From the NCBI GenBank assembly GCA_047495785.1, contig JBLDXI010000028.1, positions 434,001 to 498,000 on the forward strand: a stretch of DNA of 64,000 nucleotides. The letters are read 5' to 3'. The position numbers and the translations under genes were made by a program. The notes beneath the pieces are model-generated. The model did no database searches. It had not been told where the DNA came from and was given only the letters and a program-made list of their open reading frames with translations. Source of the stretch: Lepidodermella squamata (Eukaryota; Animalia; Gastrotricha). Shown here piece by piece: positions 1-47,216 of the stretch (the first letter of the stretch is position 1; every line of letters starts with the position of its first letter).

Positions 1-3000
1 GGAACAAAGCCGAAACTCCCCAGACCTCTAATTCTCTCAAAGCTTCCCGAATTGTAACTTCGCCCTGGGCTCTTTGGTTGAGCTCTTTCAACGCTTCAAC
101 ATTTGCCAACACAGCATCGGCGCAATCGACAATGTTTCCGAAGTTGAGTTTTTCCAGGGTCATTCCTTTCGGCATATTGAGCTGCCGGAACAATTCGAGC
201 CAGTGATCTTGCGATAAAGCCTCGCCTCTCACCCATTTGAAAGCTGGGCAGAGAGCTCGGAACTTGTCGATATCCTTCTGAATCCTAGCTACCATAGGGC
301 TAGCTTCTTCAGTCCTCAGCTTTTCATGCCAGGTTGTCAAAAACTCCTCGAATTGATAGGTTTTCGATCTGAAAGAGATCCAATCTTCCTTACGCAGGAC
401 TTCGAGGCCTGAGTGGAACTGCTCAAACAACGACCACATTTGTTCTTGAGCCGCTATGTCATCTTTCAGCTTTTTCGCCAGATCAAAATCAGGATTATCC
501 ATGCCGAAGTGATCGCATTCAGAACTCAATTTGGTAATTGCAGCGTCCAACTCATCGAATTCCTTCTTCCGATCTTTAATGCTTTGAATAGCGTCGAGAA
601 GTTGTTTGTTGGTCCCGAATAGCAAGTCATCCTTCGGCTTCAATTGCGCCCATCTAGCCGAGAATTTTTCAACGTTTGCTTGCGTGTTTTTAACCTCGGT
701 TAGCACGTTGCCTTTAATAACTTCAACCTGATCTCGAACCATGAGTTGATGAGATTCTAGTAAGACTTCGAACCTGTCCCAATTCGGCTGGAGTTGGGTT
801 AAAGAATCAACCCCTCGCCCGACTGTTTGTCTCAACAGTTTGTTCTGCTCTTCACAGGCCTGAAACAGCGGTTGCATTTCCGCCTTCAATTTCGAGAATT
901 CCGCATGTTTTACAGTCGCCTCCGAGATTTCCTCAACAGTTTGAGGACGCTTGGTTAACGTAGTAAGAGCTCCCTGGACGAACTGTTCGATTTTCTGAAC
1001 ATTTTGCTGGCATCGAGTTCTCAAAACGTGGACCAATGCATCCTGTAACTGCTGCAACAGATCTTCGACCGAAAGCTTGAACGGGTTGAGATTGATCAAG
1101 ATACAGTCGATTTTAATGTGGTTCGGCAGCTTCTCGATATCGGCACCTCGAATTTTTAGGGCTTTGAAGTTATCCTCGAAATCAACGTTAGTTACAAGAT
1201 GTTTATCGACAAATTCTTCGACATCATATTTAGCCAAAGAGCTGAAGTCACGAAATCTCTCTGTGACCAATTGAAGTCGTTTGAAGATGGATGAAGCTTT
1301 CTCGAAGCAGGTTATCATTCCTTCCGGGTGGCGCTCGATAATAGATGGGAAAATGAAACCTTCAGTTCGATCGCCAACGCCCCGGAACAAGTTCGGAATC
1401 GAGATGAATTTCTTCATTTCTTTGTAATATCTCGACTTGATTTGTTCGAAAGGCGGGTTGAACTGAATCTTGCCTGATCGAATGACCAAATCAGCTTGAA
1501 TTTCGGGTTGGTTTTCGTTCAAAGCCTCCAAGCCCATCAGCCATTGGTGTTCAAGGGCTTTGTAGAGCTGTCGGTCTAAATGATCACGCCAGGGTTTCAT
1601 TCCCTCGGCCGAAAAGCCTTGGTCGACCAAATTAGCCATGATGTGCCTGATTTCCATCAGAACGTCCTTCCACTGTTGCTGTTGTCTTAGAAGGTCGATA
1701 CTGAGTAGCCTAGCAATTTTTTCAATGATTGTTTGGTGGCTTTGGCGGAGTTTTCTGTTCTCATTCGTGAGTTTATCCGCGACTTTTTGAAGTTTCTGGA
1801 TGTAGGCCTCCAATTCCTCAGCGCTATCCCAAGTCACAGAAACATTGCCAGAAGCGCCAGTTTTTGAGTCGCCCTTCGGTTTCTTTATCAATCGCTCGAA
1901 TTCCAAAGCGGTGTTCAACATCATAGCTTGTTGACATGGCAACATTTGTTGATCGATAGTGTTGTAGAAATGACCGACTTGTTGCAGCACAATCGCGTAT
2001 TTATAGAATCGCCGTCCGACGTCGGCAGCTTTCGTGATTTTCGGAGAAATTGCATAACCAAACGATTGCATGTATGCGACTTCTTTCAGCAGAATTACTA
2101 AACGGTCGCTGTAGTTGACTATCAATTTTCCGTCAACTTGGCTGAATTCCATGACACTACCCTTCAACTCGAGACTTTTCTGCTTGTTGTCTATCATTGC
2201 CAAAACTTCACGAGACCATTCATCAGCTTTTTCAGACAGCCATGATGACAAATTCCGCTTCAATTCACCGATTTGTTGCTCGAGTTTGCCATGGGATGAT
2301 AGGTCTCGTAACACACTCTGGCTTAGTGATGAACATTCTTCGACTCGCGATAGCAGCTGACGAACGAACATCATCCGCGAAACCAGCTCAGGCATGTTTT
2401 TCGTGGTAACAGTTAGACGGCCGGATTGGAATTGCGCGAATTCATCCTCAACTTTTTTCACGATGATAAGCAAATGGCCTTGCATCATCTCTCGCTCGGC
2501 ATGTAGCTCTTTGCAAATTGTAGGGCGTCGCAGAAGTTCCTGCCTGGCTTGGAAAACTCGAAACAACTGATAAGCGTCGGATGTGTCGACTGAATTGAGT
2601 TGGAGTCGGAGTTTTTGAACAGCCTTTTGTTCGGCTGATGAGAGGGTTCGATCAACTTGACTAGCGGCTCCTCGCCACTGCTGATCAGCATAAGGCCCGC
2701 CAGCAGCTAGTGCTGTATAACCGATTGAAATGAAAGGGGCGAAAACTGAATTGGGCTGCAAGTCGAACTCGTTGCGGTCCGATGTTGAAAGCAAGCCGAT
2801 CAAAGTCTCCAGCAGTATGCGAAACGATAAGACCTCTGAAATCCGGTTGTCCAGGCGGACCAGGTTGTCGCAAATGTATTTATCGGTCTTCCAGCGATGC
2901 TCAGATTGACGCCAAAATTGGCCAGTCAAACGTTCACAGCATGATACCCAACGGCGAGAGACGAGTTGCATCGACTCGAGAACGTCTCGAGATTTAGCAT

Positions 3001-3945
3001 ACTTTCCACAAAACACGTCTTCCTCTTTAGCTATTTTGCAAACGAGTTGAGCCACAAAGTTAGCTATGTAAAAGAAAATTTAACAATATTAATGCTAAAA
3101 TGAGCAAAGTCTTACAAATGACGAAGAATATGTTCGACATTCGCTGGTCAGGAAAAGGGGGACTGATGCCAGAGTCTGTCCATAATTCATTCAGAACATC
3201 ACTTGCAACCTCAAGCGCTTCAGTAGTTGCGATCAATGAAGCAGCCTCTACGGTAGAAAAGTCCTTCACAAGAGGCTGTAAGATCATACAGATGTCGCGA
3301 GCTCTAGCTTGAGATGACTTCGATGGCCCAGAAGTGGACTGTCGCTGCCAGAAAGCAACCTCATCGGCAATAGTTGTAATTCCTAAAAGAGAGGTATTTA
3401 ATGAATAATCGATGGCAACACTGTTTGCATCATACCCATAGGTGAATCTTCTTTCGAAGGATCACCCGCACTCGAAGAGTCAATAAGAACGTTGTCCAAT
3501 TCAGATAGTAGCTTTTTAATTCTACCGTCAGAAGCAGACCCTTGCTGCAGCAATGGTAGAAACACATTGTGAACAGCATGATACAGCGTATTAAATGCTG
3601 ATTCCGTAAGAGTAAAAATAGCCACGTTTTGATTGATGTTGTCCGCAGATAAGTTAACGGCCTTGGTTTTCAAAAACAGGACGCCACTTTCTTTACCGTT
3701 TGATGCCTCGATCTGCAAGTAACACAGTTAAATAAATAACAGAGCTTATCAAACAAACAAACTCTGTTAGCAACAATCAACTTCGAACCATCTCTCCTCA
3801 CAAGTAAAACCGCGCAAGAGGGATCATCCAAAAAGTTGCCAACAGCGGCATTCGATGCTAGTTCTCCGAATGACGATGGCTCACTGGAATAGACCGACGC
3901 GGCGGCATTAACAAAGAATGCTCGCCGCTGATCCTCAATGACCAT
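1..3945 (-). CDS. DYNC2H1: Cytoplasmic dynein 2 heavy chain 1, N-terminal tail (gene continues past the left window edge)
   Basis: ATG at 3945 (MVIEDQRRAFF...NFLDD...LYHAVHNVFLPLL...LLSELD), a few short introns, then a long exon containing YAIVLQQVGHFYNTIDQQMLPCQQAMMLNTALEFERLIK, matching the dynein-2 heavy-chain tail as I recall it. Confidence 0.93.
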
Positions 3946-4078
3946 AGCTAGCAAAGATCTGAACTCTCAGCAGCGAGAGTTTGAGTGACCGTAGTAAGTG
4001 AGAATGACTATGCAGCAGGTAAATCGCATGAAACGATTATTAAAGCCGGCTCCACACACGACAGGGATTGCCACACGC

Positions 4079-4090
4079 GTTGCTAATAAC
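4079..4090. promoter_or_regulatory. Possible RFX X-box in the divergent promoter upstream of DYNC2H1
   Basis: GTTGCTAATAAC, an imperfect X-box-like palindrome about 135 nt upstream of a ciliary gene start; imperfect consensus match. Confidence 0.35.
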
Positions 4091-4343
4091 GCGCTGTTGA
4101 AGGTCACTAATAATTAAAATTTGCCATATTGTAAATTGCAGTTTGAATATTCTGTTTTTGGATATTATTTTGAAATGACAGGTTTTTATTATTTTGCGTC
4201 TTTAGGAACGCTGCTTCAGTCCATGTTTGGTTGTGAGTTCAGATCGAATCGAAATGTTGACAATTTTGATCAGCTAGAAGTTGGTCGAGCTATCTCTCGC
4301 TTACTCCTGCTGTAGATAAACGTATTCGCAATCTGAAAGTAGA

Positions 4344-5500
4344 ATGCGGATTTGCGTGATTGGCTCGGGGCAACTCGGAGCTAAGATAGCTGGTAATTTT
4401 ACGGAATTTCATCAAAATGTATTTTCTTATTGCACCCTGTCATAAAGGTGAGCTTGTTTTGTATGGCCATCGTGTGAAGCTATCAGATCGCGATGCGCGA
4501 AGACTAGATGCGGCTTACTCCAGGATAATGCAGGATCGAGAGCAGCTGCGACGAGATGGCCTCCTAACTGCAGCTCAAGAACAGGTATGACAATTCTCCT
4601 CTTAGAGCTCAGCTATTGAATCTGAAATCTGAATCGCAGGCCGTTGGTCAAATGTTCTGCTTGTCGAACATTCAAGATGCAGTGCATGATGCTGAGCTCG
4701 TGATCGAGGCAATAGTTGAGGAACTCGAGGCGAAACAACTGTTATTTGAGGAAATCAGCAAGTACTGCACAGAGACGGCCATTCTTAGTACAAACAGTCT
4801 CACCCTAAATCTGGATGAAGTCTTTGCCAAGACAGCTCATTCGGAGGTAATTATTTTACCTAGATTGCTTATCAATATTGAAAGACATTATGTGCTCAGA
4901 GAACTATTGGCATGCGGTTTCTATTTCCTGTTTACTGCATCCCTGAGGTTGAATTGACCCCTCACGGAACAACTGCGCCTGACACTATTAATAAGGTTCG
5001 AAGATTCATCTCGCAGATGGGTAAAATAGCATTTTTACGCGGAGATCGCCCGGTTATTTTGACCGAAGAAGAGCGAGAGATACGTAAACTTGAAGCCGCC
5101 GCTGCTGGTTCACTGAGCATTCATACGATGGCATCAGTTGCTGAGGACTCTGTCAGTGGAGGCGCCGGATCTCTTCACTTCTCTCGCCTCGCTCTGGCTG
5201 CCAGATCTTTTCAATCAAAAAATAATGTTGGCTATCCCAGCGATAATAACTCGATTAGCGGCGGAGGGCGTAATTTTAACAACGACTGCGCCGTTTGCTT
5301 GGATAATGCAAGGGACACGGTGCTTGAGCCATGTAGACATTTAGTAACCTGCATGGCTTGTGCAAAAAGTTGGTTGAATGAACTTAATTTCAACTTGATT
5401 TCTAACTAATTCTGTATTTTCAGCCTTGCAAAGGCGGCGCGATTCATGTCCAGTTTGCCGCTCTCCGATCGTTGATGTCATACACGTTTTCAATTCATGA
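4344..5500 (+). CDS. 3-hydroxyacyl-CoA dehydrogenase NAD-binding-like domain fused to a C-terminal C3HC4 RING finger (5 exons)
   Basis: MRICVIGSGQLGAKIAG Rossmann motif; AELVIEAIVEELEAKQLLF and ILSTNS are 3HCDH_N motifs; CAVCLDNARDTVLEPCRHLVTCMACAK|TLQRRRDSCPVCRSPI is the RING; GT-AG introns keep the frame; TGA ends at 5500. Confidence 0.85.
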
Positions 5501-5919
5501 TTTCTATTGCTAGCAGCTCGCTCTGTTCTTTCATCGAGAACTGACAGTTTTGGGCCAAGTGCTACAAGGAATCGCAATTTGTTGTTGATTTCAATATTAT
5601 TTTTCATGAAACTGTATCAAGAGTGAATCGAACCGCTGAGTATGCGAAGGTGTTTTACCCGTTGTCAATACTTTCCTCGAATCTCATACTGTTGTACCGT
5701 CAAACAAACCAAAAAGATTGTTTTAATATTTTCAGTTGGCAATAAAACCTGAAATTGCTGTCATTATTTTCTTAAATACTAAAAACACGGTCTAGGATAA
5801 TGAGCTTCGAAAGTGTTCACTCATCATTATACTACTTCGAAGCAGTAGTCGTCGTCGATGACTTCTGAACTCTCTCATTGACGTCAATCGTAACCCGAAA
5901 AAGTAGAATCAACGAGTCT

Positions 5920-6080
5920 TGGCCCGGCGCGTAAGGCGATGCTATCACCCAATCGCGGCCAACTACCTATTCGCTCGGCTGCGGCGTGCAACGCGTGATC
6001 CCCAACGGGCTCGCCTCGAACCAAAGATTGACCTAACAAATAGCCGAAAACGTTGATATCATCCGCCTAGCAATTTGCTA
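5920..6080 (-). pseudogene. Decayed partial copy of the death-domain exon at 14399-14694
   Basis: Near-identical DNA (ccaacgggctcgcctcgaaccaaagattgacctaa...aacgttgatatc) to about 14545-14735, including the intron side of the acceptor, with an internal deletion and indels. Confidence 0.85.
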
Positions 6081-6605
6081 TCATTTCAACATTATCGAAA
6101 CGCTGGCTTCTCTCAACTTTGAAACTTTGAATTTTACGATTTACCCAATAAATCAGTAAATATCGCCTTAAATATCGCCTGTCTTAAATGCTCAAACGCT
6201 CTTTGCACGTCACGAGCAAGGCTTAGGTGCTGAACTATCAGTACGCCGAAAAATAAACGCCATTTCAAAGTTTTCTATTGCATTTTCTATTGCGACTTGT
6301 ATCCCAAAGAAAAGCATGAATTGTAGGATTGTGCAAAAAATGCTGCAAAATGCGTGCCGCTCGAGTTTATTTCCAATTCATTCCAATTCATTACAAGCAG
6401 AGCAGTAACACCATACCCATGTATAAATAAGCATTAATCAGAATTCTTGAATATAACACTGCATATCATAGGCCACAAGAACAGTAATCATAGGTATATC
6501 AAATTAAAAGCCCACTAAGTTGATACTTGGATCCCACATCCGCTTCCGAGTAGACAAACTCGACTCACTGCTCCGCATCTTAAAGTCTTGACGATTTGTT
6601 GTTTT

Positions 6606-6884
6606 TCAAACCCTAATAATCCTTCGACCGTGCCCACTTGGTTTGCTGGTGTTATCATCTTTCGAATTCTTAGGCTTCTGGTTTCGCGTGATATGTGCAG
6701 GGCGCGGACGTCCCCCGTTTCTGTCGCGAAGACTTTTCTGAAAATCGGCTATCGAACGGCTTTCCTCTGAAAGTATTTCACAGGCAACGATACTAACCTT
6801 CAAAAACCAACAGTTTAATCATCAGCGCGTAAAAGCAAGAAGAAGTAAACTCACCAATAGAGCCAAAACAACGTAGCGCATCAT
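6606..6884 (-). CDS. Secreted cationic peptide precursor, copy A (2 exons)
   Basis: MMRYVVLALL|VSIVACEILSEESR...NQKPKNSKDDNTSKPSGHGRRIIRV*; hydrophobic signal peptide, phase-0 intron, upstream TATA; paralogous to the copies at 11185 and 37403. Confidence 0.8.
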
Positions 6885-7475
6885 TTTCTACCGAAACGAA
6901 AAGTTAATTGTAAATCGTAGAGGAAATAATTGAAAAATGATTGCTCCTTGCTACCAGCTATGCTGTTTTATACCCTGAAAAAACCGGTTGACTGCCAAGA
7001 TATCGAGGCCGCCGTCAAGCACCTGCCATCAAGATAAATAAACAGGCGATCGGTGTTATTTGCTATCGACGAACCTTACGAATAAGGTTGAATGAACTTA
7101 AACTAAATACTCAAGACACCAGCGCCGCATCAAAATGAATCGAGAGGAAATAATTGAGATGAAGTTGAAAGCCAAAGCTAAATAGATATAAATATACAGG
7201 GGCAACTTGTAACAAAACTGAAGCTGATTGGTGTCGATCAAATTAATGAGATTGAAACATTCAGAATATCTTTTGCCGGAATCCGTTGCTACTTTTTTCA
7301 TATAGCCTCGCATAGCCACCGCCAGGCGAAGGTCATTGGGAATGCCTGTGATCCCCGCCTCAAACCAACCCCCGAACAATTAACAAATTCGAATTAACAA
7401 ATGATCATTTTATTGAGTTATCAAATACACCACAATTATGTACAAAACAGCGTATAATGGTATTATCACTTGTAA

Positions 7476-10400
7476 TCAGAAACCGTACTTCATTTTCGAC
7501 GCCGACTTGTTCATCTTGGACGACGCCCAGAAGTCCTTCAACTCCTCCTCACGCTCCTTAGCCAGCCACGCCAAGTACGTAATTTGATGGCGCGATTTCG
7601 CCCGACCCCGCGGCGCCATCATATTGTTCGGACCATTCAGCGCCGCCTTAGCTTCCGCCATCGCCTTCTGCCGCGCGTACTCGGCCGGATCCAGCAAATC
7701 ATCGGCGTTACACTCGACAAACTGTATCGACTCGTCCTTATTGTGACGGCCCTGCATCTTGCGCAGATCTTCCTGCGTAAACGAGGTCGAAGCTCCAGCG
7801 GCTAGCAGCGACTCGGGAGTCTGCGAGGCCAACCAATCGTGATACCCAGCCTCGTTCGGATCGTCCTCATCTTCTTCATCGTCATCATCCTCGTCATCTT
7901 GATCACCCTCAACAAGATCGATGGTAACCTTCTTGTAGTTGATCGAAGATTTTTGGGTATTTGTCGGCCGAGACGGGCCGAAAATGCCTGATAATTCGTT
8001 ATCAGGCTGAGAAGTTGCGGTCAAGTTGCCAGGCTTAGCCGGGCCTATTTCAGTTCCGTAGTCGAAATGCTGCTCAACCGGCTTTTTGCTTTCATTTATC
8101 GAGAAAAAGCTGCTAGGTTCGTCGTCATCAGACGAGTAGAATTCACTCTCCATTTTCTTCGGCTCGACTACGGCCGGCTTTTTTATTGCGGGTTCAGAGG
8201 TGGCTTGGCTATTCTGAGCTTTTGCTTGAGCGGCTGCGACGGGGCGAGACTTCGCGCCCCACTCGACGTCCTCCGTCGCGATTGCACGCCGCCGCCCGGC
8301 GACTGAGGGTGGAACTAAGCCGCTTGGGACGCGAGGTGGGGGCAGCACAGAGAACAGCGGGCATCGCGCTTTTGGTTCGATGGGCGTTGGTTTCTTCGAC
8401 GGCGGACCCGCGTCTTCATCGTCGTCGGCATCGTCCAGTTTCGGCACTGTAATACGAACTTTGCCGGAGGCATCGGGTTTGAATGACGGCAGGACTGAAA
8501 ATAGAATAAAAATAAAAAAAAATAAAAATAAAAAAAGGAGGTTACAAAAAATCCAGTTGCATTTGATTCAATTTCTTTCTATTTTGCATCAGATAACCAA
8601 GTATCATTCTGCTCCAAAGTTCCTGAATTTCACAACCCAAGCCATTTAAACACGATCTTATTATTTTTTGCTACCAAATACCTGGACAATTTTAAGCGGG
8701 AAGTAGATAGACAATTAGGCATAAAGTAAACAGTTCATTCGTAGTAGCGTTGGTGTACGTGTTTTGACACCTGTTCGGGTGACTCATCTAAAGAATATAC
8801 AAGGAGGCATGGTCAGTGCACTAATGCTCGAAACTGAATTCTTACCATCAAATTGGATGGATAGCACATACAAGCATGGGGAAGCAGTTGACTTTAAACT
8901 TCAAACTTGTACATATCATTTGCGCGACCAAACGCAATAACAAAAATAAAACTGATTGCAGTCTGAGCCTTGACCCCTTGACTAGGCCTGTCGTGGTCAT
9001 TGACAAAGACCCTAGAAATTCGAGAATATTGTATTCCTTCAACTACGGCGCATGATGATGAAAATGACGGAAAATAGGAAATTCGACAAAATGTTGAGAT
9101 TAAATATCTCGCAAAGGAGAAAAGATGAAATCCAATGAAATTGTTGTTATTTAGATCAAATCTGATTAATCAACGGTTGGAAAATTCAATCAGCTCAAAG
9201 ATGCAAAAAACCGCTTGTATTTCCGTGTTACTTTTGGCAAAAGGCAACAGTTCATTGCGTCATTATGTTACGTGAGAAATTAAAATTTTTATTTTCCGAG
9301 AAAATTTTCCGAGCAGAGGTGGAAACAGGTCGGGTTGACCGGCCGGTATTTGACCGGTTGCCGGTTGGGTATGGATCAACTAAATTCTAGCCGGTTGACC
9401 GGTAAACTGGCCTTTTCGGCATACAATCAAAAAATATAGCGAATGCGTTTATCAACAATCTGAGGCAAGCGCTAAAAATTTTGTATTTTTGATGGTTCAT
9501 ATAGTGGCCAAAACCATTTTGAATTAAAAAGAAAGCCATTACGTGATTTATGTGGTTTTTGTGTTGGAGACTTAATCTTGAAACCGGTAAAATACCGGTA
9601 AACCGGCGTCGGTACAACGGTTTTCTACCGGCTTAGGTTGCCGATGGGTGACATGGGTGCCAGTTGGGTCGCCGGTCGGGTTGGGTCGAGGTTTTACCTG
9701 TTTCCACCTCTCTAAGATTCTCTGAACAACGTCGTTTTTACCCCAGTGAAGGGGTTTGGTGGCCCTCGTTAACGCAGTTCTTAATTTTAACGCATTGTTC
9801 AGTCAAATTACGATTGCACAAATGAGCGAATTTGGAAAAATTGAATATTTGATTCCGTTTTTTATGACGCATTTATGACGCGTTGTCGTGGGGAGCGTTC
9901 CGTCGTTCCGTGCAGAAAACTATTGCAATGGCGCAAGTTTTATGCTTTTAGAAGTCAAAATTTAAGCCGAAAGTGGACAATAATTAAAGCTCATTCAATT
10001 TTTAGTCGTAGGAACGTAAAGCTCATTCATTTGTCATTTCGGCGGCAGAGATTACTGAATTTTTCCGCAGTAGAGATTGCTGTAGAGCTGTAGAGATTTC
10101 AAACTTGCCCTTGTGAATAGCTTCGCTCAAATGACAAATTATTGCACAAATTATTGTTTGTTATTTAGCTCATATTTTGCATTGATTATTACCGTACTGC
10201 CCGAAAAAATGTCAGCCTCGAATAAATGGCAGCCTCAAATAAATGTCAGAAGTTAGAGGTCGTTCGAAAAAATAAACGTCAGGCCCGAAATAAATGTCAG
10301 TCCCTTTTAAATGTCAGGGGTTCATCAACGTTTGAAAAAAATAAATGTCATGGTTTTTGTTCCGGGCAGTACGGTATTCGGATTTTTGAGAACGAAAAAA

Positions 10401-12978
10401 AATATAATTTAAAATGTTTGAATTATTTGGAAATTGTAGGGAAACAAAAATGCTACTTTAATGAGTTGTTGAGAAATTACAAAATGGTTAAAAGGAATTT
10501 GAATTCTACTACGTTATCATCCTCGCCTTCTCCTCGTGGCAAGAAACCGAGCATATGCCGATCTATTCTATTTCGTTGTTTCGATTTATCTCAAAGGTAA
10601 CACTTGGAGATAGGACTCCTAGCCGTAACAACGGCAAATTTCTAAACAAGGTCAAGTAACACACAGTTATTGCCGATTTCGATCTCATTAGCTGCGGATG
10701 GTCTCATTAAATGCAGCTTTGTTTGACATATTCCTGTGCTGAGGTGGGCAGACCTCTGGTAGTATATGCCATATCTGTTAGAAGGGCGAAGTGCTAAATG
10801 GCTAGCTACTAAAGAAACCAGGATTACGTTTATCAATGATTTAATCTCATTCATTTGATCGACACCAATCACCTTCACTTGTGTTACAAATTGCCCCTGT
10901 ATATTTATATTGCAGATTTGGCTTCAAAATTCGTCTCTCCATTAATTTCGATGCAACGATGAACTAAAGTCTCGAGTATTCAGTTCAGTCTTTTTGCCAG
11001 GGTTTTTGCGATAGAAGAAACACCCATCGCCTGTTTATTTATCTTGATGGCAGGTGCTTGACAGCGCCACCGCGATCTCAAGGTTTATGAGGGTATAAAA
11101 AGGCACAGCTAGCCGCAAGCAGCAGTCATTGTTCAATTATTTTCTTGAAAAATTTACTATTTAATCGTTCGTTCTCGGTAGAAAATGATGCGCTACGTTG
11201 TTTTGGCTCTACTGGTGAGTTTACTTCTTGCAATTACGCGCTGATGATTAAACTGTTGGTTTTTGAAGGTTAGCATCGTTGCTTGTGAAATCCTTTCGGA
11301 GGAAAGCCGTGGTACGATGGCTGATCGGCAGACTAAGCCACACGGCGGAAAAGTTAGAAGTCCGCACCCTGCACATACGCCATCGCGAAACCAGAAGCCA
11401 AAGGATTCCAGCATACCAAGTGGCCAAGGTCGAAGACGTATCAAGTTTTGAACAACAACAAATCGCCCAAGCTTTACGATGCGGGTTGAGCTGAGAGAGA
11501 GATGGAATTCCTGCTTCGCTTGTAATTCGAAATAAACTCAAAATGGCATGCATATTGCAGCATTTTAGCGCGATCCTACAATCCATGCCTTTCTCGTGAT
11601 ACAAGTAGCTTTAAGATGCTGGAACCTAGTAGTTTTCGAGAAAAGGCGTAATTACTACAACATTACGCTAGTTATTAAGTTTAATACGGCTCAAACAGTT
11701 CCAAAACGTATGCAATTAAATTCTCCGTCATCGGGGCTTTCCATTGACATTCTGCTTGACATGTATCATACCTGAGAAAATGACATAGTGTGTGGTCTAA
11801 ACTCGATCGCAAAATCCTATGGCAATGTCACCCCGCTGGCTTAAGTCGCCACGTTTTATGGTATGTCAAGGAAAAATGTTTACGAGGTCCGCGTCAGACC
11901 TCGTAAAGATGCAAGTAACATAACCAATATCTCCGAAAAAGTCACAGCTCAAGTACTTAAGATTTTAGATCGAGATGAATCAAACATTTAAACATGAAGC
12001 TCCTATAAACCAGATGTGTGTTTATGTACCGTTGGCGTTTAGGTTACCACCGGGATCGTAGAGCCGACTGCGGTTCAAGTGATACCCAGCGGTAACGGGC
12101 AACTCTCACGGGGCCCCTGTGCTTAAGATGTTCACAACATCGAACTGAATGGAGATGGATGAGTGGAGGCAACAGGACGGGAGCAATCCTATCTGATTCA
12201 CCTTCTGGTTTTTCTACCTGTTCCTCACCGTTGGCGCTGAAATTCACATCTGATTCATCTATCGATTAATTTTGATGCAGCGCTATTGTTGGAGGCATTT
12301 AGTTCAACCTTACTGCCTAGGTTTGTCGAAAACACCGTCCGTGCCTGTTTATTTATCTTGATGGCAGGTGCTTGAAGGGGGCCTCGCAGATCACATGGTT
12401 TGCTGGGTTATAAAACAGCAAGCCGCAGTCATTTATCAATTACTTTCCCGACAAATTTACAATTAATTCTTCATTCTCGGTAGAAAATGATGCGCTGCGT
12501 TGTTTTGGCTCTACTGGTGAGTTACCTCCTCGCTATTACGCGCTGATAATTCAACTTTTGGGTTTTTTAGATTAGTATCGTTGCTTGTGAGAAATTCATG
12601 CTTTTATTTGTGAGAAAAGTAGGTTTTGACGCTGGAAGCCTGCAGAATTTTCGAGAGGAGACGAAATTACTACAAGAAGTCAGGTAAATATTACGTAGTC
12701 GGTGAAAATTATCTATTGATTTATTTTAGAGATTTTAGAAATTTTTTTGAGATGAATGGCGTATAACTGAAACATTCAAAAATGGAGCTCTTACCTAGGG
12801 AAGATTTCTTGGGTAGCGACCTGCCAAAAGTGTCGGCATCGTCTAGAAACGACGATTTCGATTGAGGTTTCGACTTAGTCGGAGCTTTCGCGGCAACTTT
12901 CGGTGCTGCTTGCTGCTCTTCACCCTCGGAATGGCTGCTCTCGTCACCACTATCACCATACGCCACTAGAGCATTCAT
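7476..12978 (-). CDS. PRCC: Proline-rich protein PRCC (exons 12978-12795 and 8494-7476; 4.3-kb intron)
   Basis: N-terminal MNALVAYGDSGDES and C-terminal RHQITYLAWLAKEREEELKDFW...KMKYGF are PRCC signatures; the phase-1 splice joins in frame. Confidence 0.9.
9314..9712. mobile_element. MITE with 16-bp terminal inverted repeats (possibly hAT-derived)
   Basis: AGAGGTGGAAACAGGT ... ACCTGTTTCCACCTCT; many internal accgg/ccggt motifs; no clear target-site duplication. Confidence 0.7.
10190..10376. mobile_element. Tc1/mariner/pogo-type MITE
   Basis: TA-CCGTACTGCCCG ... CGGGCAGTACGG-TA termini; internal repeats of aataaatgtcag. Confidence 0.8.
11030..11100 (+). promoter_or_regulatory. Conserved peptide-family promoter module (forkhead-like TGTTTAT, E-box CAGGTG, TATA box)
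   Basis: ctgtttatttatcttgatggcaggtgcttga...tataaaa recurs upstream of all four copies (about 6965-7047 -, 11030-11100 +, 12343-12416 +, 37495-37577 -). Confidence 0.7.
11185..11451 (+). CDS. Secreted cationic peptide precursor, copy B (nested antisense in the PRCC intron)
   Basis: MMRYVVLALL|VSIVACEILSEESRGTMADRQTKPHGGKVRSPHPAHTPSRNQKPKDSSIPSGQGRRRIKF*; AATAAA at 11531. Confidence 0.8.
12487..12687 (+). pseudogene. Internally deleted peptide-family copy C
   Basis: Promoter, exon 1, intron and ISIVACE are retained; the sequence then jumps to DNA matching the 3' flank of copy B (gctggaa...ttttcgaga...aattactacaa), so the mature peptide is missing. Confidence 0.75.
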
Positions 12979-13255
12979 TTTTTCATATAAAGAATCCCTA
13001 GCGAAAAAATCAAAACAGACGTAAATGATGTTTCCGATTGGTTAGACATAATTTATTGCGGAAGACCCAGTGGTCCATCAGATTATAAAAAAGGAGAGCA
13101 AAGAAAGTAAAAATTGATTAGCGCAACAAATGACCTAGAATCCATCCCTGAAGAGTAGAAATTTCAGAAATTAGCGGCAATTTTTCAAAAATTTCAATTC
13201 AATTCTATGCTTTGTTGCGTGAATCAATTTCGCAATGAATGACTAATTTCCACTT

Positions 13256-14241
13256 TTATTCATTCTCTGCGCACCACACGGCAGCCCATGAGCCGAGCTC
13301 AGCCATCATTCTATTGTAGCCAATCACAACCGCATTCGTTTTCGCCATCAGCTCATCCAGCTGAGCCGCTTGTTCCTGCTGCTTCCTCACAATGCGATTC
13401 AACCGCTCCGCATGATCGACACATCCGGTTATGGCTTTACTGTTCAACACGCTTTGCAGCTGTGAGACCTTTTTCAAACTCTCAACAGCCGCTGTGATTT
13501 GATCGTGCTCCATTAGGATGACCTCGCAGTGAGTTCGCAAAGCTGCGACATCCGTCGCTTGAGCATTTATGGACACGTTTGACTTCATAGATAGGTGCAA
13601 CGCATGTTCCAGTTGTTGAACTAAATAATGAAGAAAATAGCACAGAATCAATATTCTTGATTGATAATTGGAAAAAATGATCTTCGCACCAAAATTATGA
13701 ACATGTATTTTGTGGAAAGCCTTATCCTGAGTTCCGAAGATTCGACCATTTTGTCCCAAAAGTTGCAAACTATTTTTTAATTTGGCAACTTTTTGTAGGA
13801 AACTCAACAAATTTTATGCTTAAATTAAACCTAATGAGAGAATATTCCATCTTTTATCGGACCGAGGAATTTACTGGAGAAAACCCGGAATGGTAACCCG
13901 TTTGGACCAAATTTCTGCGGACTTTTTTAATCTAACAAGTGGCACTCTTGATTAATATTCTCTTGATCTTTGAATTTTTCTAAAAACCATGTATTTTCTT
14001 TGCTTGCGTTACTTATGGGACACGCCGTACAAGAACTTGGATACTTACGTTGTGAGAAAATTCTGTTAATATTGCGACGTCCAGTTGTGTAAAGCACCAA
14101 TTTCTTGTTCAACTCAGCCAGTCTCGCATCGACGGCCGGATTTTGGCCTTTGGGCGCCTCAGACAAATTCCCAAGAACGCGGCTTTCCAACTCGCAAATT
14201 CGCTCCTCCAAAAACTCTAGGTTGGCAGTTTGAGTGCTCAT
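13256..14241 (-). CDS. DCTN3: Dynactin subunit 3 (p24/p22); exons 14241-14049 and 13620-13256
   Basis: LEERICELESRVLG, VILMEHDQI, LQSVLNSKAITGCVDHAERLNRI, YNRMMAELG..W follow the DCTN3 pattern; the splice is in frame. Confidence 0.8.
13751..14029. mobile_element. MITE family 1 copy in the DCTN3 intron
   Basis: tgtcccaaaagtt...acttatgggacacgccgta; homologous to 14823-15209 and 58822-59199. Confidence 0.75.
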
Positions 14242-14398
14242 TACAAAACTTGAGAATAAATCTAGAAACAAATTAAAATTAGCAGTTATGAAGTGGAAGT
14301 TTTATTCTCTACAGAAGTTCACTCGTAGTGCTTGAGATCTTGCAATTCTATCACAACTATTTATAAAAAGATTCCACGGAACAATTTTTGCTGTCATT

Positions 14399-16423
14399 CT
14401 AAGCGATTGATGCCCGAATTTCCTGCGCAACTTCGCGCATGTTGCTAGAAACCAGGGCTTGTTCAAGCGCTTCCATAGTGGCATAGCCGCGGTCGCGATC
14501 GCGCCAAGTTTTCAGAATAGTCATTATCTTCTGCAAGTCCTGACCCGGCGCGTACAGCGACGCTATGGCGTCGACATCGGCGACGGTGAAGTTGAGGTAA
14601 TTACACAGCATCATCCAATCGCGGCCGACCAGTCGCTCGGCCGCGGCGCGCAACACGTGATCTCCAACGGGCTCGCCTCGAACCAAAGATTGACCTAAAA
14701 ATATCCAAAAACGTTGATATCCGCTCAACAATTCACCATCAATTTTAAGGCCATTAAAACGAAGGACCAAATGATCAGAGAAATTGGTTTGGAATTTCCC
14801 GATTTTGAATTGTAAATAAAACTACGGCGTGTCCCAGAAGTTTCTCGACTATTTTTTAATTTGGCAACTTTTTGTAGTAAATTAAACTAATTTTTATGAA
14901 AATGAACTAACCGAGAGAAAATTCCATCTCTTATCCGCGATGAAACCAAAGAAATAAAAAAAAGTCACGAGAGAAAAACCGAAACCCCCGATTTTAATGT
15001 TAATTGTTTTGCTAATTTTCGGTATTTTATCCTGCTGGGCCAAATTTCTCCGGAACTTTTTAATCCCATTGAACTTGACATACTTGATTAATATTCTCGT
15101 GATTTTTGGAATTTTTTTTGTGGCAATGAGATTAGACTTCGTCTCTCATTTTACAGTTTCTGAACCCTTTTCCGTGCGTTTTTTTTTGCTTGCGTTACTT
15201 ATGGGACAAGCTTCATTATTCGATTTGAAACGCTCATAGTCATAATTTTAGCTGATTAGGCTTGAGAAAGTTATTTATCATACCAAGAGCTGAGAGTCCA
15301 CCATTCGAAGCGTTCACGCTGGCTCCCGGGCCGCCGCCGCCGTCCGGCCGCGGTGACGCAAGTGACTTGGCAATTTCCGACTGCATCTTGTTGAACATGT
15401 CATGCTCGGCGACCATGCGCGAAATCGGCAATTCGTCGTCCATAACTTTGACCTCGGGCGGTAGAATGGCGAAGTCTAACAGGCGAGCTGTTGCTTCCAT
15501 GTGAATAAGATGCCACGTTTTGAACTCGTTCATATCAACCTGGCCGTCGCGATTCGTGTCCAACTGGCTCATGACGGTTGTAGCCAAATCATCCACTTTG
15601 TACTGAATACAGAGGGGCTCATTAGGAAATTACCAATAACTAAGTCATATCAATTAGAAATTTCCATTTGATATTTGAATAGCTAAGCCGTGATACTTCC
15701 GTCAAGATTGAAGAACGACATTCCTATCCTTAAGTCTTAAAGCGGATCTGAGCAAGGGACTTACTTCGTCCCAATCTTGATGCATTTTCTGGATAACCTC
15801 CTTCCATTTGACAAGATTCAGTGGGTAGTTTTCGTTCATCAAATAGAAAACGACGCCCAATTTGTCCTCCAAATCGCATCGAGACCACCACGTAGCGGCA
15901 CATAAGAACGTTCGGAATGACACTTCACCTTTCGTATTTTGCAAAAAATGCAGAATCTGGGAGAAGAAAAACAACAAAAATTGATAGAAAGAAATCAAGA
16001 TTTTTGGCGAATTTATAATTGGTGCTCAAATCACAGCTAAAAACGTGGAAGGTTAATTTATCTGAATCAAAGCCACTCGTGCGAATATTTACTCTGACGG
16101 CGAAAAAATCGTTAATCTTAGCTCCCTTCACGATAACGGTTCCGTCACTGGTAGATCCGAGCTGCCGAAATCTGGTCCACATTCGATGAACCTCCACTGG
16201 GCTCACTAAATGTATTCAATTTTCAACGTAAAAAATTGATTAATTTCACAAATTCATCAATTTTAAGCTGAAAAATTGCGTGGACTTCCTCCAGATTATA
16301 AAATTTTCATACAATTCGAAACTCACTTGCACAAGCAGCTGCATTGTGAATGATCCAACTCATTTCGCCCGAGCCAGGCGAGACATGCGGCGGCAATTCG
16401 GCTGGTTTCGGAATTTTAGCCAT
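14399..16423 (-). CDS. Calcineurin B/CHP-like EF-hand protein with a C-terminal death domain (5 exons; start uncertain)
   Basis: SPVEVHRMWTRFRQLG, GEVSFRTF, EDKLGVVFYL, canonical EF loop DTNRDGQVDMNEF; spliced in frame to GRDWMMLCNYLNFTVADVDAI...ILKTWRDR...ATMEALEQAL (death-domain pattern). Confidence 0.8.
14823..15209. mobile_element. MITE family 1 copy in an intron of the EF-hand/death-domain gene
   Basis: TACGGCGTGTCCCAGAAGT ... ACTTATGGGACA inverted termini; internal similarity to the other copies. Confidence 0.75.
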
Positions 16424-16576
16424 ATACGGCCCCATTTTTCAATATTTTCAAAAGCTCTAAATATTTCTTAAGAAATTTCAAAATTTCAATCTTGATGAAT
16501 CGTTTAATAATACTGAAAAATAGCGCATTTCTGTGAATTTTATAAATAGGAAGACGAATAATTTTCGATGTTTTCA

Positions 16577-19391
16577 TTAATGCGGCGTGCTGTAGATGTC
16601 TGGCCTGCGTTGTTTTCGCGTCGGAATAGCATCTCGAACCGCATTGACCTCACTCGGATCTAAATCAACCACCAACATGCCTTCTTTCTCATCAAGTTCG
16701 CCCATAATTTTGCCCCACGGATTCACAACCATAGAATGTCCCCATGCAATATAGCCGGCCGTTTCGTCACGCGCCGGTGAGCAAGTCGCAACATACAGCT
16801 GGTTATCGATTGCTCGAGCTTTTTGAAGCTGCTCCCAATAGTCGGGGCCGGTTGTTGTGCTGAAAGCGCCAGGGTAGATCAACAGGTTGCAGCCGGCTTC
16901 AGTGTACCAGTTCGCGAGTTCTGGGAAGCGAATGTCGAAACAAATGCCGACGCCAATTTTCCACTTTTCATCTGCAAATAAATTCACAAAATGATAGTTT
17001 CGAACGAGAAATCCCGATTTTGAGCACCACAAAAATCCATCATATATTTTTTTCAAATTTTCGTTATTTAAAAAATATAAGTGGATCACTAAAAAAACTT
17101 CAAATAAATACACTTTACCGGGCACAAAATTAAAAAATAGCTAACATACTTATGACACCATGGAGAAAACTGTTGCCAGGTTTTAGAACATCCGATTCGC
17201 GAAACGTAATTTTTCCCGGAATATCAATGTTGAACAGGTGCATTTTGCGAAATTTGCCATTGAAAGACCCGTCGCTGTTGAACCACGCGCACGTGTTGTA
17301 AAGACTGCCATCAGTCGGGTCCAATTCTGGCACCGAACCGCCAATCACTGCAATCGAATTCGCTTTCGCAGCTTCGGCCAATTTTTGGCACGTTTCTCCG
17401 CCTGGAACGGCTTCGGCATATTCGCCGAAAAATTTGACGCCATAAGGTGAATTGAAACATTCCTAAAAATGACACGCGAATTATCAAATTGTTCCCATCC
17501 AACAAGTTGGATTGCTGTTTCCATCAAATTGTTTTAATATACCCAACCATCTTAGGAATATATTAACTGGCTACCTGGTATAATCTTCATCTTGTGAGTA
17601 GGATAGAATCTCTATGATCTTGCGCATGTAAGATGCCATTTTTTAATTAACAAGAGTTCTAATTTCTAGGCACCAACTCTTCTTTTATCTCAAATTTCAG
17701 AGAAGACAAGTAACTTTTTCCTCAAGGAAATCCAGGAAAAAAACCGCCCCTGGCGAGTATAACTATCCTGGAAAGGACGAGTCATTCGTAAGTTTTATGC
17801 CAATTGGGCACCGACGAAGCCGCAGGCAAGCGGAACAAAAAAGCTGTTGATAATTTCTCGGAAATGAGTAGTCGCGGAAACACACGTTTGTGAGCAATGA
17901 AAAATAATGAACCAGAGAAATTAGAAATGGAAAACGCTCGCCTGGTTTCGATGGTTCAAAACTTTCGTCTGTCTCACTCTCCGGGAAAACCATCATCAGC
18001 ATCTCCTGCCAAATACGATTAACCTTCCAAACCAAAGCGGAGGAAGTCAAGCTGCTCGAAGCTGAAGGTGAGCCTGAACCTCAACGTAATATCGACATCA
18101 TTCAGTATTCTAACACTGATCCGAGATCGAGTTCCTAAAATTATATACGGCCAGAAGAAGAAGACCCAAGGTAATCAGCAAATTATCTAACGATCTTGCC
18201 TGTTCATGTTTCCATTTTCTGCCTTTATCAGTCTTGCAAGAAGAAAAGCAAGGCGACGCCGAGCAAGACTACGGTGACCAAGACGACTACGAGCAACGCC
18301 GTCTCGAGCAAGAAGAGCGAGTCCGTCGTGAGGAAGAAGAGCGAGAACATGAGCAAGAACAAGATGATAAAATGGCACAAGGCGAATCTCGCCGCAGTTC
18401 ACATGAAGAAGTCATGGACGTTGACGTTGTTGTCGCCGGAAGCGTCCCTAGTGGTCAAGGGCAGGAGGAGGGTGAAGGCACAGAAGACCAGGATGTCGGG
18501 CGGTCTAGCGGTGTAGGCCGGGCTCAATACCTAGCACCCGATGGCGGCAGCCAGGTGGTCAGCGGCAGTCTCCCGAGTGGTCAAGGCCGCGATCCACACC
18601 CATCAGGTTCGACTGCAAATCGCGACACGGCTGATGACGACGCGACCGGTGCTGTTGGCTACGGATTTGTTGACTACGCGCGACGTGAAGATCACGGTGC
18701 GGGCCATACGATGTTCCGCGTAAGACGGCACTGAGCGACAGGCCAAGCGAATCGCCAAGTCAAATGCAACTTCGGCGTCGAAGATTACGAGTCTTTCCAT
18801 CCAACGCTACTCCATCTTATTCGAGCGCTTGGCATCCGCGGTGATCCGATGCTAATGTGGGACACTGATAAGTCGTACCGCTGCTACGACTAGATTCTTA
18901 TTGTCGACTAGATGGGTCTTATTATAATTCTTGGAAAAGAGTATATTTTACGCGAAAAATGCATGTAAAATACGGCGTAAAATTCGAAAAATCCTTCGAG
19001 TTGCTGTTAGCGCATGACCTTCGATTCGAAGCAATTTCGTGAACATGCGTTACAAGACGTTAACCCTACTGTAATAAGCGTTTCAACATCGGTTGAAAGA
19101 AAGCGAAATGATTCTTGCGAAACAAGTACGGATGGCTGTGCGGGAAAAATAATACTTTCACATTATTTAGAAGATTTTCTCATACATTTTACTACAGCCT
19201 ATAACTGGCTAATAACTGGTTGCCAAATAATTCAAAAAATTTTCTGATTTCGAAAAATGAGAGGAAATTACCGGCAAAACAGCTAGATGAGCACCTTTAG
19301 CCTTGGCTGCTGCGATAAATTCGACAGCTTTCTGAACATTTTGCGCTTTGTTTGCCGTAACGCCGAGCTGAATCAGTGCCACCCTCAACAT
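16577..19391 (-). CDS. NIT2: Omega-amidase NIT2 (nitrilase family; 3 exons)
   Basis: MLRVALIQL...AVLP|[61 protein letters not shown]; the E-K-C catalytic triad is intact. Confidence 0.95.
18140..18892 (+). pseudogene. Nested antisense acidic ORF followed by a frameshifted RRM-like remnant in NIT2 intron 1
   Basis: GT-AG intron 18171-18231, E/Q/D-rich ORF to 18734 containing RNP1-like [11 protein letters not shown]; another frame continues [15 protein letters not shown]. Confidence 0.5.
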
Positions 19392-20540
19392 TTCCAATTA
19401 ATCACCCTAAAAATGGAGGGAAAAACACAAACAATTTTAACAATTTTTTTGACATTTTATTCATTTTCTTATCATTCACTTTTGTTGTCTTTTCGTGTCG
19501 CAAAAAACTGAAGCTCACAAAAAGGATGTTGCTGAAAAACGAGAGAGAGATAGAGAGAAAACGTGTTAACATTATATCGTATTTTTTCAAGCTCACGATC
19601 GTGCACGGTAAAACAATTATTCTGTTAATTATGCTTAAATTATTCTCAAAAAAAATTACACAGGACAAGATGCGTTTCCAAAGCAGCGGTATTTTTTTCG
19701 ATAGGAGAAGAAGAAACGGCGCGAGATATGAATCATTTAGCAACAAAATATTTTAGCCATTTTTACAGCTTTAGAAAATTAGTTAATTTACATTTATTTC
19801 AGGCCGAAAGATTTTCTCGTCAAAACAGTGTACATAGCACGGCGCAAAAATGACCGATCCAGCATTCGTAAAAATCGGCCATTTTTGGGCCTATCGACTA
19901 TGAAAAATGTACATATATAGAAGAAATGATAAACACAGGAAAGACGTGAAAGAAACTGGTTATCAATATAACATAATCTTCGGTAAAATTTTCAATTCTC
20001 CTCATTGGCACGAAGCGCTTTGTTGTCTACGAAAAAAATCGACGACACACGTGAGTGACCCAGAAGCACAACCAAATTCACTTCGAAAAACTAAACACAA
20101 TGCACATATGTATAGGTAATTTTTCAACCATTAGCTCAATTTTCACGTGAAAGTAAAGTTACAACAACATCCTCATCGAAAAAAAGAAGATGAAACGATT
20201 GCCATTAATTTTTAATTGAAGAGGAAGCAGCAAAAAATATCGAATGCAGCGATTTTTCACAAATCTTAAATTAGTTTCTTACATAAAAAAAATGTAATTA
20301 TTTCTTTCTAGTAGGTTATGGCGATAAAATTTAGCCGATATTTCAAGAAAACGTGAGGTTAAAAGTTGTATTTCAATTCAAATTTTGCCAAAAATTATTT
20401 CTAATGGCACTTATTCATCTGACACGTGGAATATAGGCTATTTCATTTCTCAATATCACACTTGGATTTCCGCTATAAAAAAAATCGGCCAATATTTACA
20501 GGTGAATGCAAAAGATAGACAATTATTTTTCGATCAGTTT

Positions 20541-26816: not shown

Positions 26817-27953
26817 ATGGCCATCCTGTGCCCGCAACAATGGGCATATAAAATGTTGAAGTGTTCGTATTCTAGATCATTTGCTGCTGCTCTGCCATTT
26901 CGCGCTGCTGCAATTCCAGATGTCGACAAGACTCGTTTAGCTCAACACAAAATTCATGTTCGAACTAGTATTGGACGATGGGAGGATAAGCCGAGTGGGC
27001 TTGACTTTGAGGTGTCGTACCTTGATATTATTCCACGCGGCTTCAGTCAAAATCATATTGATTCGTTGCCCGTAATTTTGTATTTAACCGGATATATCGG
27101 CAGTCATCGGCCAGTTCGTCACTTTTTGCTCAAACTTGCTGATCGCACGAAGTGCCGCCTTGTTGCGCCTCTGTGGCCTGGTGTTTGCGATGAAACTCGA
27201 GCTCTTTCCAAGGTCGACCACGAATTGTTTGGCCATAGTGTTACAGAATATTCTGAGTTCACGATGGATTTCTTACAGGCGATGAACATCGTTCCTCAGA
27301 AGCAGCCGCTCTCTTCAATTGTTGCTCACAGCGGAGGCTGCCATCCTGCTTTAGTACTTGGCGCTCGCCAAGCTAGATTAACAAAAAGTCTTACATTGAT
27401 TTGTCCATCCGCACCCCGCCCTCTCTCCAAGTATGGCTACGAGTGGATTCATCGTTTTGTAGCAAGCACCTGGGACATTTCTTATATCAGACCTGTTCTG
27501 AAGCCTCTAATTCATACCAGCGTCTTCTTTAGTCCATTTCGTGGTCATTTATCAACAGATGCCGCGGTCAGCATTGCTAAGGCGACTTTGAAAGTTGAAC
27601 GGACCGAAGTTTTGGGAGCGGCGAATGATGTATTACATAAGCAACTGCCTTTGTTATATGTTTACTCGGATCTCGACGAATGGATTCCTTTGGCTGACAC
27701 TCTAACATTAGCCGAACACTTGGAATTGCACCCAGACTCGAAGAAGGGTCGGACCTCTACCGACCGCTACTCGATTAAAGGCGGCGAAGTGGTCAAATTG
27801 AAGCCTCCACATCACGTCGGTGATGCATTGCACGAATCGATTCGTCTTCCTCGACATGCCGTTCGAATTGTGAAGGGTGGATCCCATTGGCCCCAACGAA
27901 ACTGCCCAGATCTATTGTTGGACAAAATATCTGATCTTTTGCAGTATGGTTGA
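26817..27953 (+). CDS. Intronless alpha/beta hydrolase (possibly DUF1057-like)
   Basis: About 380-aa ORF; VILYLTGYIGSH, RLVAPLWPG, nucleophile elbow AHSGG, YSDLDEWI, GGSHWPQ. The start could instead be the downstream MLKCS ATG. Confidence 0.8.
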   Translation: MAILCPQQWAYKMLKCSYSRSFAAALPFRAAAIPDVDKTRLAQHKIHVRTSIGRWEDKPSGLDFEVSYLDIIPRGFSQNHIDSLPVILYLTGYIGSHRPVRHFLLKLADRTKCRLVAPLWPGVCDETRALSKVDHELFGHSVTEYSEFTMDFLQAMNIVPQKQPLSSIVAHSGGCHPALVLGARQARLTKSLTLICPSAPRPLSKYGYEWIHRFVASTWDISYIRPVLKPLIHTSVFFSPFRGHLSTDAAVSIAKATLKVERTEVLGAANDVLHKQLPLLYVYSDLDEWIPLADTLTLAEHLELHPDSKKGRTSTDRYSIKGGEVVKLKPPHHVGDALHESIRLPRHAVRIVKGGSHWPQRNCPDLLLDKISDLLQYG

Positions 27954-43922: not shown

Positions 43923-44133
43923 TCGAAATTATTATCGGCAAGAATAAAATTGCCTAAAAGAATAAGAATTTCCGAATTTAGTTTCATTATTCTCTCTTTC
44001 CTCGAGTTATCATCCCAGATTTACAAAAAGCAATTCAAAGACAAGATATGGAAAACAGACGACAGAATTAATAATAAAATGGAAAGCGAATATCAATTAT
44101 ATTACACAAAATTTGTTAATTTTTTCCGTATTT

Positions 44134-46311: not shown

Positions 46312-47216
46312 TGCAAACTAGAAATTGATAAAAATAACAGATAATTTTTGAATAACGCATTGAAAGTTGAAAGAAGTAAGCACAGTAAAACTGTAAAATC
46401 TCAGTGAGTGATCTAGGTTCTTAAACATCCGCAAACTGACCGAACTTCCTCCGTAAATAAAAATAAAAGAATTCAACAGCGTATCGAACAAAAACAATAT
46501 AAAAAATTAACATAGCAAATAGACCATTACGCTGCTTGAAATAACTTATTGAATACTTAGGGACCTACTATTTAAAATGGATGACAGGTGCATTCATTAA
46601 CCTGATGAGTAAGAGAGGCGTAAAGCTAAGAGCTAAGGCGGCAACAACGCCCACACCTTTGATCTTCTGCCGCTTGTTCAAAACTTATTTTCGATCCGCG
46701 GTATTAATCATAAAGTAATGACGGCAATTCAAATTTTGTCATTTCCGGAAATAATTTCCATAAAATTTAAATTCAACTGGTCCCAAAACAAAAATGATTT
46801 GGAAATAATTTTTTATTTTGTAAGAGGAAAGGGCGCTCCATTTTTGGCGGCGCCCATCATCGTTCGCAGAAGTTCGCTGAAGTTTGAAGTTTGCTGAAAG
46901 TGGCAGCAAGCCTTCCACGTTCTAACCGCAATTTGATCTGCGTTTTGCGGTTTCTTCGTTTTTCTTAGCTGTTTGTGGACAACTTTTCATCTTCTTTGGT
47001 ATATTATCATGCTCACCACAAAGGATGCTCACATGCTTGCTCCGTGGTGATGATGACCTTTGACCCCTCGGTATTTTCACGTAGATGAGTTAAGAATTGC
47101 TCTCAACTCGTAATTTTCATCTGGTTTCTTGTATTTTATAGAATATGAGGTTAATTTAATCATCTATTGCTTCAACTTGGAACTGCAGCCGTCTGCAGAC
47201 CGCTTTTTGACCAAAA

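Follow-up and report, generated by a model that had tools for sequence, protein, structure and literature searches.

Organization of the cluster

The 64-kb stretch of DNA analysed here (hereafter the window; GC content of 42%) comes from the gastrotrich Lepidodermella squamata (contig JBLDXI010000028.1, positions 434,001–498,000) and carries four functionally unrelated genes arranged head to tail on the minus strand: a NIT2-like omega-amidase gene, a gene encoding a protein with EF-hand and death domains (EF/DD), DCTN3 (dynactin p22/p24) and PRCC (Table 1). The same cluster is present in a relative known only from metagenome scaffolds, and its layout suggests an animal operon, the transcript of which would be resolved by spliced leader (SL) trans-splicing.

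The gene models are based on a reading of the minus strand between 7000 and 19800 combined with frame analysis, and the domains were assigned with Pfam. NIT2 matches CN_hydrolase (E = 5e-18 and 2e-27), the EF/DD protein contains an EF-hand and a C-terminal Death domain, both exons of DCTN3 match Dynactin_p22, and PRCC matches the Pfam family PRCC (E = 4e-20). Strand reading, frames and Pfam domains all agree with an earlier note on this DNA, which had described four unrelated, closely packed genes on the minus strand. In L. squamata, introns of the cluster have expanded to 0.4–4.3 kb and carry repeats, and the intergenic gaps are short.

Contigs of sequencing run X1 behave like RNA, although contigs cannot reveal transcript starts or single transcripts. 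They confirm three introns: 17149–16972 in NIT2, 14048–13621 in DCTN3 and 12794–8495 in PRCC. One contig skips 14048–13621, and others stop at 17150, 16971 and 12795, where their overhanging letters match the next exon; the junction of PRCC exons 1 and 2 is represented by a loose end matching 8494 onward. Additional contigs end at or near the EF/DD exon borders 15765, 15282 and 14695, and one spans the DCTN3 stop codon and the 3′ untranslated region (UTR) as far as 13179.

Table 1. Coordinates of the cluster, its putative processing signals and its upstream neighbour in the window
Feature	Position	Strand	Details
NIT2-like omega-amidase gene	16577–19406	-	3 exons: 19391-19272, 17462-17150, 16971-16577; 275 aa
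EF/DD gene	14399–16456	-	5 exons: 16435-16327, 16205-16093, 15956-15765, 15602-15284, 14694-14399; 342 aa
DCTN3 (dynactin p22/p24) gene	13256–14261	-	2 exons: 14241-14049, 13620-13256; 185 aa
PRCC gene	7476–12997	-	2 exons: 12978-12795, 8494-7476; 4.3-kb intron full of repeats
T-rich TAG, putative acceptor of NIT2	19407–19420	-	ccctccatttttag; exon start 19406; 15 nt before ATG 19391
Putative acceptor of EF/DD	16457–16470	-	taagaaatatttag; exon start 16456; 21 nt before ATG 16435
Putative acceptor of DCTN3	14262–14275	-	taatttgtttctag; exon start 14261; 20 nt before ATG 14241
Putative acceptor of PRCC	12998–13011	-	gattttttcgctag; exon start 12997; 19 nt before ATG 12978
ATTAAA, putative poly(A) signal of NIT2	16503–16508	-	46 nt before the G of the EF/DD acceptor
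AATAAA, poly(A) signal of EF/DD	14301–14306	-	39 nt before the G of the DCTN3 acceptor
AATAAA, poly(A) signal of DCTN3	13052–13057	-	54 nt before the G of the PRCC acceptor
AATAAA after the PRCC stop codon	7409–7414	-	marks the end of the cluster
Gap before the NIT2 acceptor, ~1.13 kb	19409–20540	-	putative promoter site and outron
Furin-like proprotein convertase, last exon and stop codon	20541–20841	-	upstream same-strand neighbour of NIT2

Gaps, poly(A) signals and putative acceptors

From stop codon to ATG, the three internal gaps measure 141, 157 and 277 nt, and they share one layout: a poly(A) hexamer, 39–54 nt, a T-rich TAG, 15–21 nt and the ATG. The AG dinucleotides of the four putative acceptors, NIT2 included, are found at 19408–07, 16458–57, 14263–62 and 12999–98. 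The lengths given for the second and third gaps in the earlier note were correct, but its 153 nt for the first had been counted to the second ATG of EF/DD. For the same reason, its distances between acceptor and ATG stand for NIT2 (15 nt), DCTN3 (20 nt) and PRCC (19 nt), but the 33 nt of EF/DD shrink to 21 nt when measured to the first ATG. The latter, at 16435 (MGPY...), is the likelier start because the orthologue in the relative also begins with MGPF..., and the N-terminal MG... is a possible candidate for an N-myristoylation signal. The two AATAAA hexamers that had been placed about 40–55 nt before an acceptor, at 14301–14306 and 13052–13057, do lie 39 and 54 nt from it, and the second is the sole canonical hexamer 3′ of 13179, the furthest reach of the RNA contigs. 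The ATTAAA of the NIT2–EF/DD gap (16508–16503) had been overlooked.

The acceptors were scored with a weight matrix built from 13 ordinary intron ends of the locus and the relative, taking the best AG site 5–40 nt before each ATG; p values were obtained against random 60-nt windows and combined across sites by Fisher's method. Site by site, the advantage over random windows is modest, with individual values of 0.006 (NIT2), 0.13 (EF/DD), 0.08 (DCTN3) and 0.35 (PRCC); the combined value for the four L. squamata sites is 0.006. At 11 of the 12 sites examined, TAG follows a run of T, as it does at ordinary intron ends of this genome. U-rich runs precede each acceptor but are not specific. By itself, the sequence signal of the acceptors is suggestive, not decisive. 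A comparison of the gaps found no shared motif besides the poly(A) hexamer and the T-runs.

The cluster in a second species

Both the gene models and the anatomy of the cluster are conserved in the relative. A search with PRCC exon 2 returned one close protein, P0001, which is encoded on a metagenome scaffold in ENA and is 51–55% identical over the full length. The four scaffolds that carry the cluster (L001–L004, from four assemblies) are 99.5–99.8% identical to one another and therefore count as one species, so the three extra scaffolds allow no footprinting. All four keep the gene order, with proteins 51–80% identical to those of L. squamata. On L001, NIT2, EF/DD, DCTN3 and PRCC stand in the same order on the same strand and are followed by cwf18, an open reading frame (ORF) of 135 residues and a gene for a gamma-tubulin complex protein (GCP). 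According to tblastx, protein identity between the two species is 71–79% for NIT2, 54–82% for EF/DD, 41–46% for DCTN3 and 57–70% in blocks of PRCC.

The relative's genes are much more compact, with introns of 48–125 nt and internal stop-to-ATG gaps of approximately 125, 68 and 76 nt (range 68–126 nt). In five gaps, including the next two (before cwf18 and before the gene that follows it), the order of elements is AATAAA or ATTAAA, 14–38 nt, a pyrimidine-rich TAG or CAG, 12–25 nt and ATG. The putative NIT2 acceptor of the relative is ttctttttttctag, 17 nt before the ATG. That of EF/DD (gattttag) lies 21 nt before the ATG, and the 5′ UTR after it is partly alignable between the species. The DCTN3 acceptor, ttttctttctttag, lies 19 nt before the ATG (p = 0.006) and 35 nt after an AATAAA, and that of PRCC (aatttag) lies 15 nt before the ATG. 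The distances from AG to ATG thus pair up between orthologues (L. squamata/relative) as 15/17 nt in NIT2, 21/21 in EF/DD, 20/19 in DCTN3 and 19/15 in PRCC. In both species EF/DD and PRCC have weak single-site scores; the combined p value for six sites of the relative is 0.0016.

The gene upstream of the cluster is the same in both species, and the common order is convertase, NIT2, EF/DD, DCTN3 and PRCC. In the relative, the product of the upstream gene (scaffold L002) contains Peptidase_S8, P_proprotein and Furin-like domains, and a tblastx match pairs L001 179–241 with positions 20852–20790 of the window, i.e. with the convertase. The distance from the convertase stop codon to the NIT2 ATG is 1149 nt in L. 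squamata, where it is 4–8 times that of the internal gaps, and 753–758 nt in the relative, where it is also several-fold longer. Because this gap exceeds the internal ones several times in both species, the transcription unit probably begins at NIT2. The convertase is probably transcribed as a unit of its own. Upstream of NIT2, a comparison of the two species revealed no conserved block.

The relative's scaffolds also illustrate a problem of annotation. The called cwf18 ORF overlaps the PRCC stop codon by 11 nt (L001 5313–5323); the ATG at 5398, with an acceptor at about 5372, is the likelier start. Automated calling on these scaffolds therefore misplaces the starts of clustered genes. More generally, genes of this kind will be fused or given wrong starts by gene finders that assume a separate promoter and a long 5′ UTR for every gene.

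Two scans of JGI metagenome contigs revealed no further relatives, and searches with PRCC and nicastrin, another gene of the window, found no close homologues in named genomes. The other protein neighbours of PRCC come from spiders, lampreys, tunicates and fish. A protein search with DCTN3 exon 2 returned no match, and exact protein look-ups (one single-exon gene of the window and an 86-residue contig-sized piece) returned no record.

A polycistronic reading and its alternatives

The data are best read as a single transcription unit of four genes, an animal operon resolved by SL trans-splicing, a reading to which we assign a probability of roughly 0.6. Transcription by RNA polymerase II would begin within the ~1.1 kb that precede NIT2, which would serve as the single promoter region, and proceed through NIT2, EF/DD, DCTN3 and PRCC, about 12 kb in total. 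Cleavage and polyadenylation directly downstream of AAUAAA or AUUAAA would release each upstream message, and a short capped leader derived from a separate small RNA would be spliced to the UAG acceptor 39–54 nt past the signal. The outcome would be four separate mRNAs, each with only 15–21 nt of 5′ UTR of its own.

Several features argue for this reading. Each short internal gap contains a hexamer followed by a T-rich TAG close to the ATG, and both the gene order and this layout are kept in the relative, with matching AG-to-ATG distances between orthologues. The likeness of the sites to acceptors is jointly above chance in either species. The introns of L. squamata have swollen with repeats while the gaps stayed short, and in both species NIT2 is preceded by a gap several times longer, which is what a sole promoter region would predict. 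Finally, the layout recurs in the window, in the nicastrin–SCAMP and hydrolase–CID gene pairs described below.

A number of results weigh on the other side. No leader is present at the four acceptors among the 12 loose ends listed for the X1 contigs, and no RNA that bridges the gaps was seen in these contigs. Judging from depth bins, 14188–14329 and 12998–13178, which include the 5′ ends of DCTN3 and PRCC, have no X1 coverage: a contig ending at 14187 explains the depth in bin 14107–14307, and a contig ending at 13179 explains that in bin 13102–13302. The uncovered interiors of the gaps fit fast processing, but also separate genes. A leader RNA gene was not found in the window in Rfam scans by gathering score and by E-value, and the published rotifer leader GGCTTATTACAACTTACCAAGAG (PMC3795323) has no match in the window or on L001 with up to three mismatches. 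Taken one by one, three of the four acceptors are matched or surpassed by 8–35% of random windows. Moreover, the order of genes is broken right after PRCC in L. squamata. The next gene downstream of the PRCC stop codon is on the opposite strand, and the cwf18 and GCP genes of the relative are absent from the window, which indicates that the cluster was broken after PRCC in one of the two lineages. Of the operon put forward in the earlier note, the anatomy is therefore real and conserved gap by gap in the relative, but its leader does not appear among the loose ends listed at the locus.

The closest competitor retains trans-splicing and gives up the operon. A leader would be added at the TAGs of all four genes, and some or all of the downstream genes would be driven, additionally or exclusively, by a promoter of their own located in the gap or at the 3′ end of the preceding gene, as in nematode 'hybrid operons', which have such internal promoters. 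The gaps of L. squamata do contain TATA-like words (tttataaaa, tttataaata and ttttataat) some 80–110 nt before each internal acceptor, a further point against a single promoter, and gaps of 141–277 nt could hold a minimal promoter. Furthermore, a TAG also precedes the ATG of unclustered genes (e.g. NIT2 itself and nicastrin), so the acceptor alone is no mark of an operon. These words are, however, not more frequent than expected by chance in a sequence of 68% A+T (we estimate ~0.7 expected versus two exact TATAAA), and none are found in the relative's gaps, of which those of 68–76 nt already hold a poly(A) signal and an acceptor. In the 68-nt gap, these two elements leave ~35 nt for anything else, and no other argument against separate promoters is as strong. 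Taking into account that order and spacing are also kept across 20–50% protein divergence, we consider internal promoters unlikely, although less so than the remaining alternatives.

The weak single-site scores of EF/DD and PRCC in both species, together with the lack of a leader at the locus among the loose ends listed for the X1 contigs, could also mean that there is no trans-splicing at all. In this case the genome would simply be compact and the genes would be transcribed singly with a very short 5′ UTR; the T-rich TAG would belong to a core promoter or initiator, or else close a tiny cis intron. Every gap of both species would then need a promoter that overlaps the 3′ UTR and poly(A) signal of the gene before it, and nearly all sites resemble ordinary intron ends, which makes this explanation improbable. 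A chance neighbourhood, in which short gaps reflect compaction without shared expression, is very improbable: four neighbours share a strand about once in eight by chance, so strand agreement alone is not significant, and synteny with the relative does break after PRCC, but compaction leaves unexplained a signal–acceptor–ATG layout that is conserved in position at every gap in two species.

Comparison with known trans-splicing systems

In nematode operons, the poly(A) signal and the acceptor are roughly 100 nt apart, and in SL2-type operons the downstream genes receive a second leader (SL2) and a U-rich Ur element lies ~50 nt past the cleavage site. In the putative gastrotrich operon, the distance from signal to acceptor is shorter (39–54 nt, and 14–38 nt in the relative) and is known from the layout of the DNA. 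In other respects the cluster is similar to nematode operons of the Caenorhabditis elegans type (PMC1657053, PMC7986045): it consists of unrelated housekeeping genes on one strand, is conserved between species, and has an upstream poly(A) signal, a putative U-rich acceptor within tens of bases and short predicted 5′ UTRs after the acceptor.

Among other protostomes, trans-splicing is widespread in the chaetognath Paraspadella gotoi, whose operons were delimited as genes on one strand with spacings below 250 bp (PMC12460157). These operons are enriched in housekeeping genes and have no operon-specific leader, and the leader genes often reside in ribosomal DNA clusters (PMC12460157). The leaders and trans-spliced genes of P. 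gotoi were shown by RNA-seq and Iso-Seq, whereas the present case, in another phylum, rests on DNA layout and its conservation. Flatworms, for which a close relationship to gastrotrichs has been proposed (PMC6468455), possess leader RNAs and some polycistronic units (PMC12582326, PMC3795323), and their leaders are 36–37 nt long and end in ATG (PMC3795323). Rotifers resemble L. squamata in being small freshwater invertebrates, and they have trans-splicing and short 5′ UTRs (PMC3795323); operons were said to be unreported in rotifers as of 2021 (PMC7986045). No rotifer protein is present among the named close matches in the PRCC searches.

The L. squamata assembly (2024; 122 Mb, 157 contigs, 43% GC) was published without mention of trans-splicing or operons (PMC11660948), and Gastrotricha are missing from recent overviews of lineages with trans-splicing (PMC7986045, PMC12460157). 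A literature search on gastrotrichs found no report of spliced leaders, trans-splicing or eukaryotic operons. The suggestion that such an operon would be new for the lineage is therefore plausible, although the operon itself is supported only in part. What is new here is that a second species conserves the entire layout; SL-resolved operons as a kind are already known. That Gastrotricha possess a multi-gene SL-resolved operon, shared by two distantly related members of the lineage, is a more tentative claim, which we place slightly below even odds.

SL trans-splicing and operons have a patchy distribution among animal phyla, and it is still debated whether they had a single or multiple origins (PMC12460157, PMC7986045). 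If the operon is real, a phylum for which no such system has been published would extend the sampling at an informative point of the tree, as a proposed close relative of the trans-splicing flatworms, and a comparison of gastrotrich and flatworm leaders would test a single origin of trans-splicing and operons in the common ancestor against a repeated one. The presence of the same cluster in a much more compact second species also offers a ready comparative test of which gap features are required.

Other tight same-strand pairs in the window

Two more pairs of genes in the window are closely spaced on one strand. Nicastrin and SCAMP (minus strand) are separated by ~210 nt from stop codon to ATG, with a TAG before each ATG. 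Nicastrin (43922–46330) is a single-exon gene encoding 725 residues, with tttctag 6 nt before its ATG; a protein search with it returned plant matches only, at 26–29% identity. In SCAMP, which is downstream, ttcttttag lies 31 nt before the ATG. On the plus strand, a single-exon alpha/beta hydrolase gene (26817–27953) is followed after 84 nt by a gene with a CID domain (RPRD-like, 28038 onward). The hydrolase has a CAG acceptor 30 nt before its ATG and the CID-domain gene has ctcatag 19 nt before its own; the gap between them is tighter than any in the four-gene cluster.

Repeats, haplotypes and minor observations

The introns of DCTN3 and EF/DD each contain one copy of a very high-copy short repeat (13705–14106 and 14710–15312, respectively). 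The depth of the DNA run reaches 1,700–6,800 in these copies, compared to ~70–90 nearby, and many contigs link both copies to other places. Given this depth and these links, the repeat looks like a member of a family of miniature inverted-repeat transposable elements (MITEs) or short interspersed nuclear elements (SINEs). Repeated blocks are also found on the minus strand in the PRCC intron and just 3′ of PRCC, at approximately 7020–7060, 11040–11250 and 12360–12560 (e.g. atcaagataaataaacaggc and ctcaccagtagagccaaaacaacg), which suggests two or three copies of one mobile element. The first intron of NIT2 contains an acidic ORF of 166 residues on the plus strand (18234–18734), which has no Pfam match and only a faint RNA-like depth of ~6. 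It could be a nested gene or the remnant of a mobile element.

Between 13209 and 15528, the DNA run contains a second haplotype that accounts for ~20–33% of the depth and differs by ~3–5% in places. An RNA-like run from 2015 shares the variants of this haplotype in the same interval, in places exclusively. The second haplotype points to a polymorphic culture or to pooled animals.

Outside the cluster, a match similar to the Twister-P5 ribozyme is found at 58597–58663 on the minus strand. It covers the full model and scores 33.8 bits (E = 0.003), against an Rfam gathering score of 37.6.

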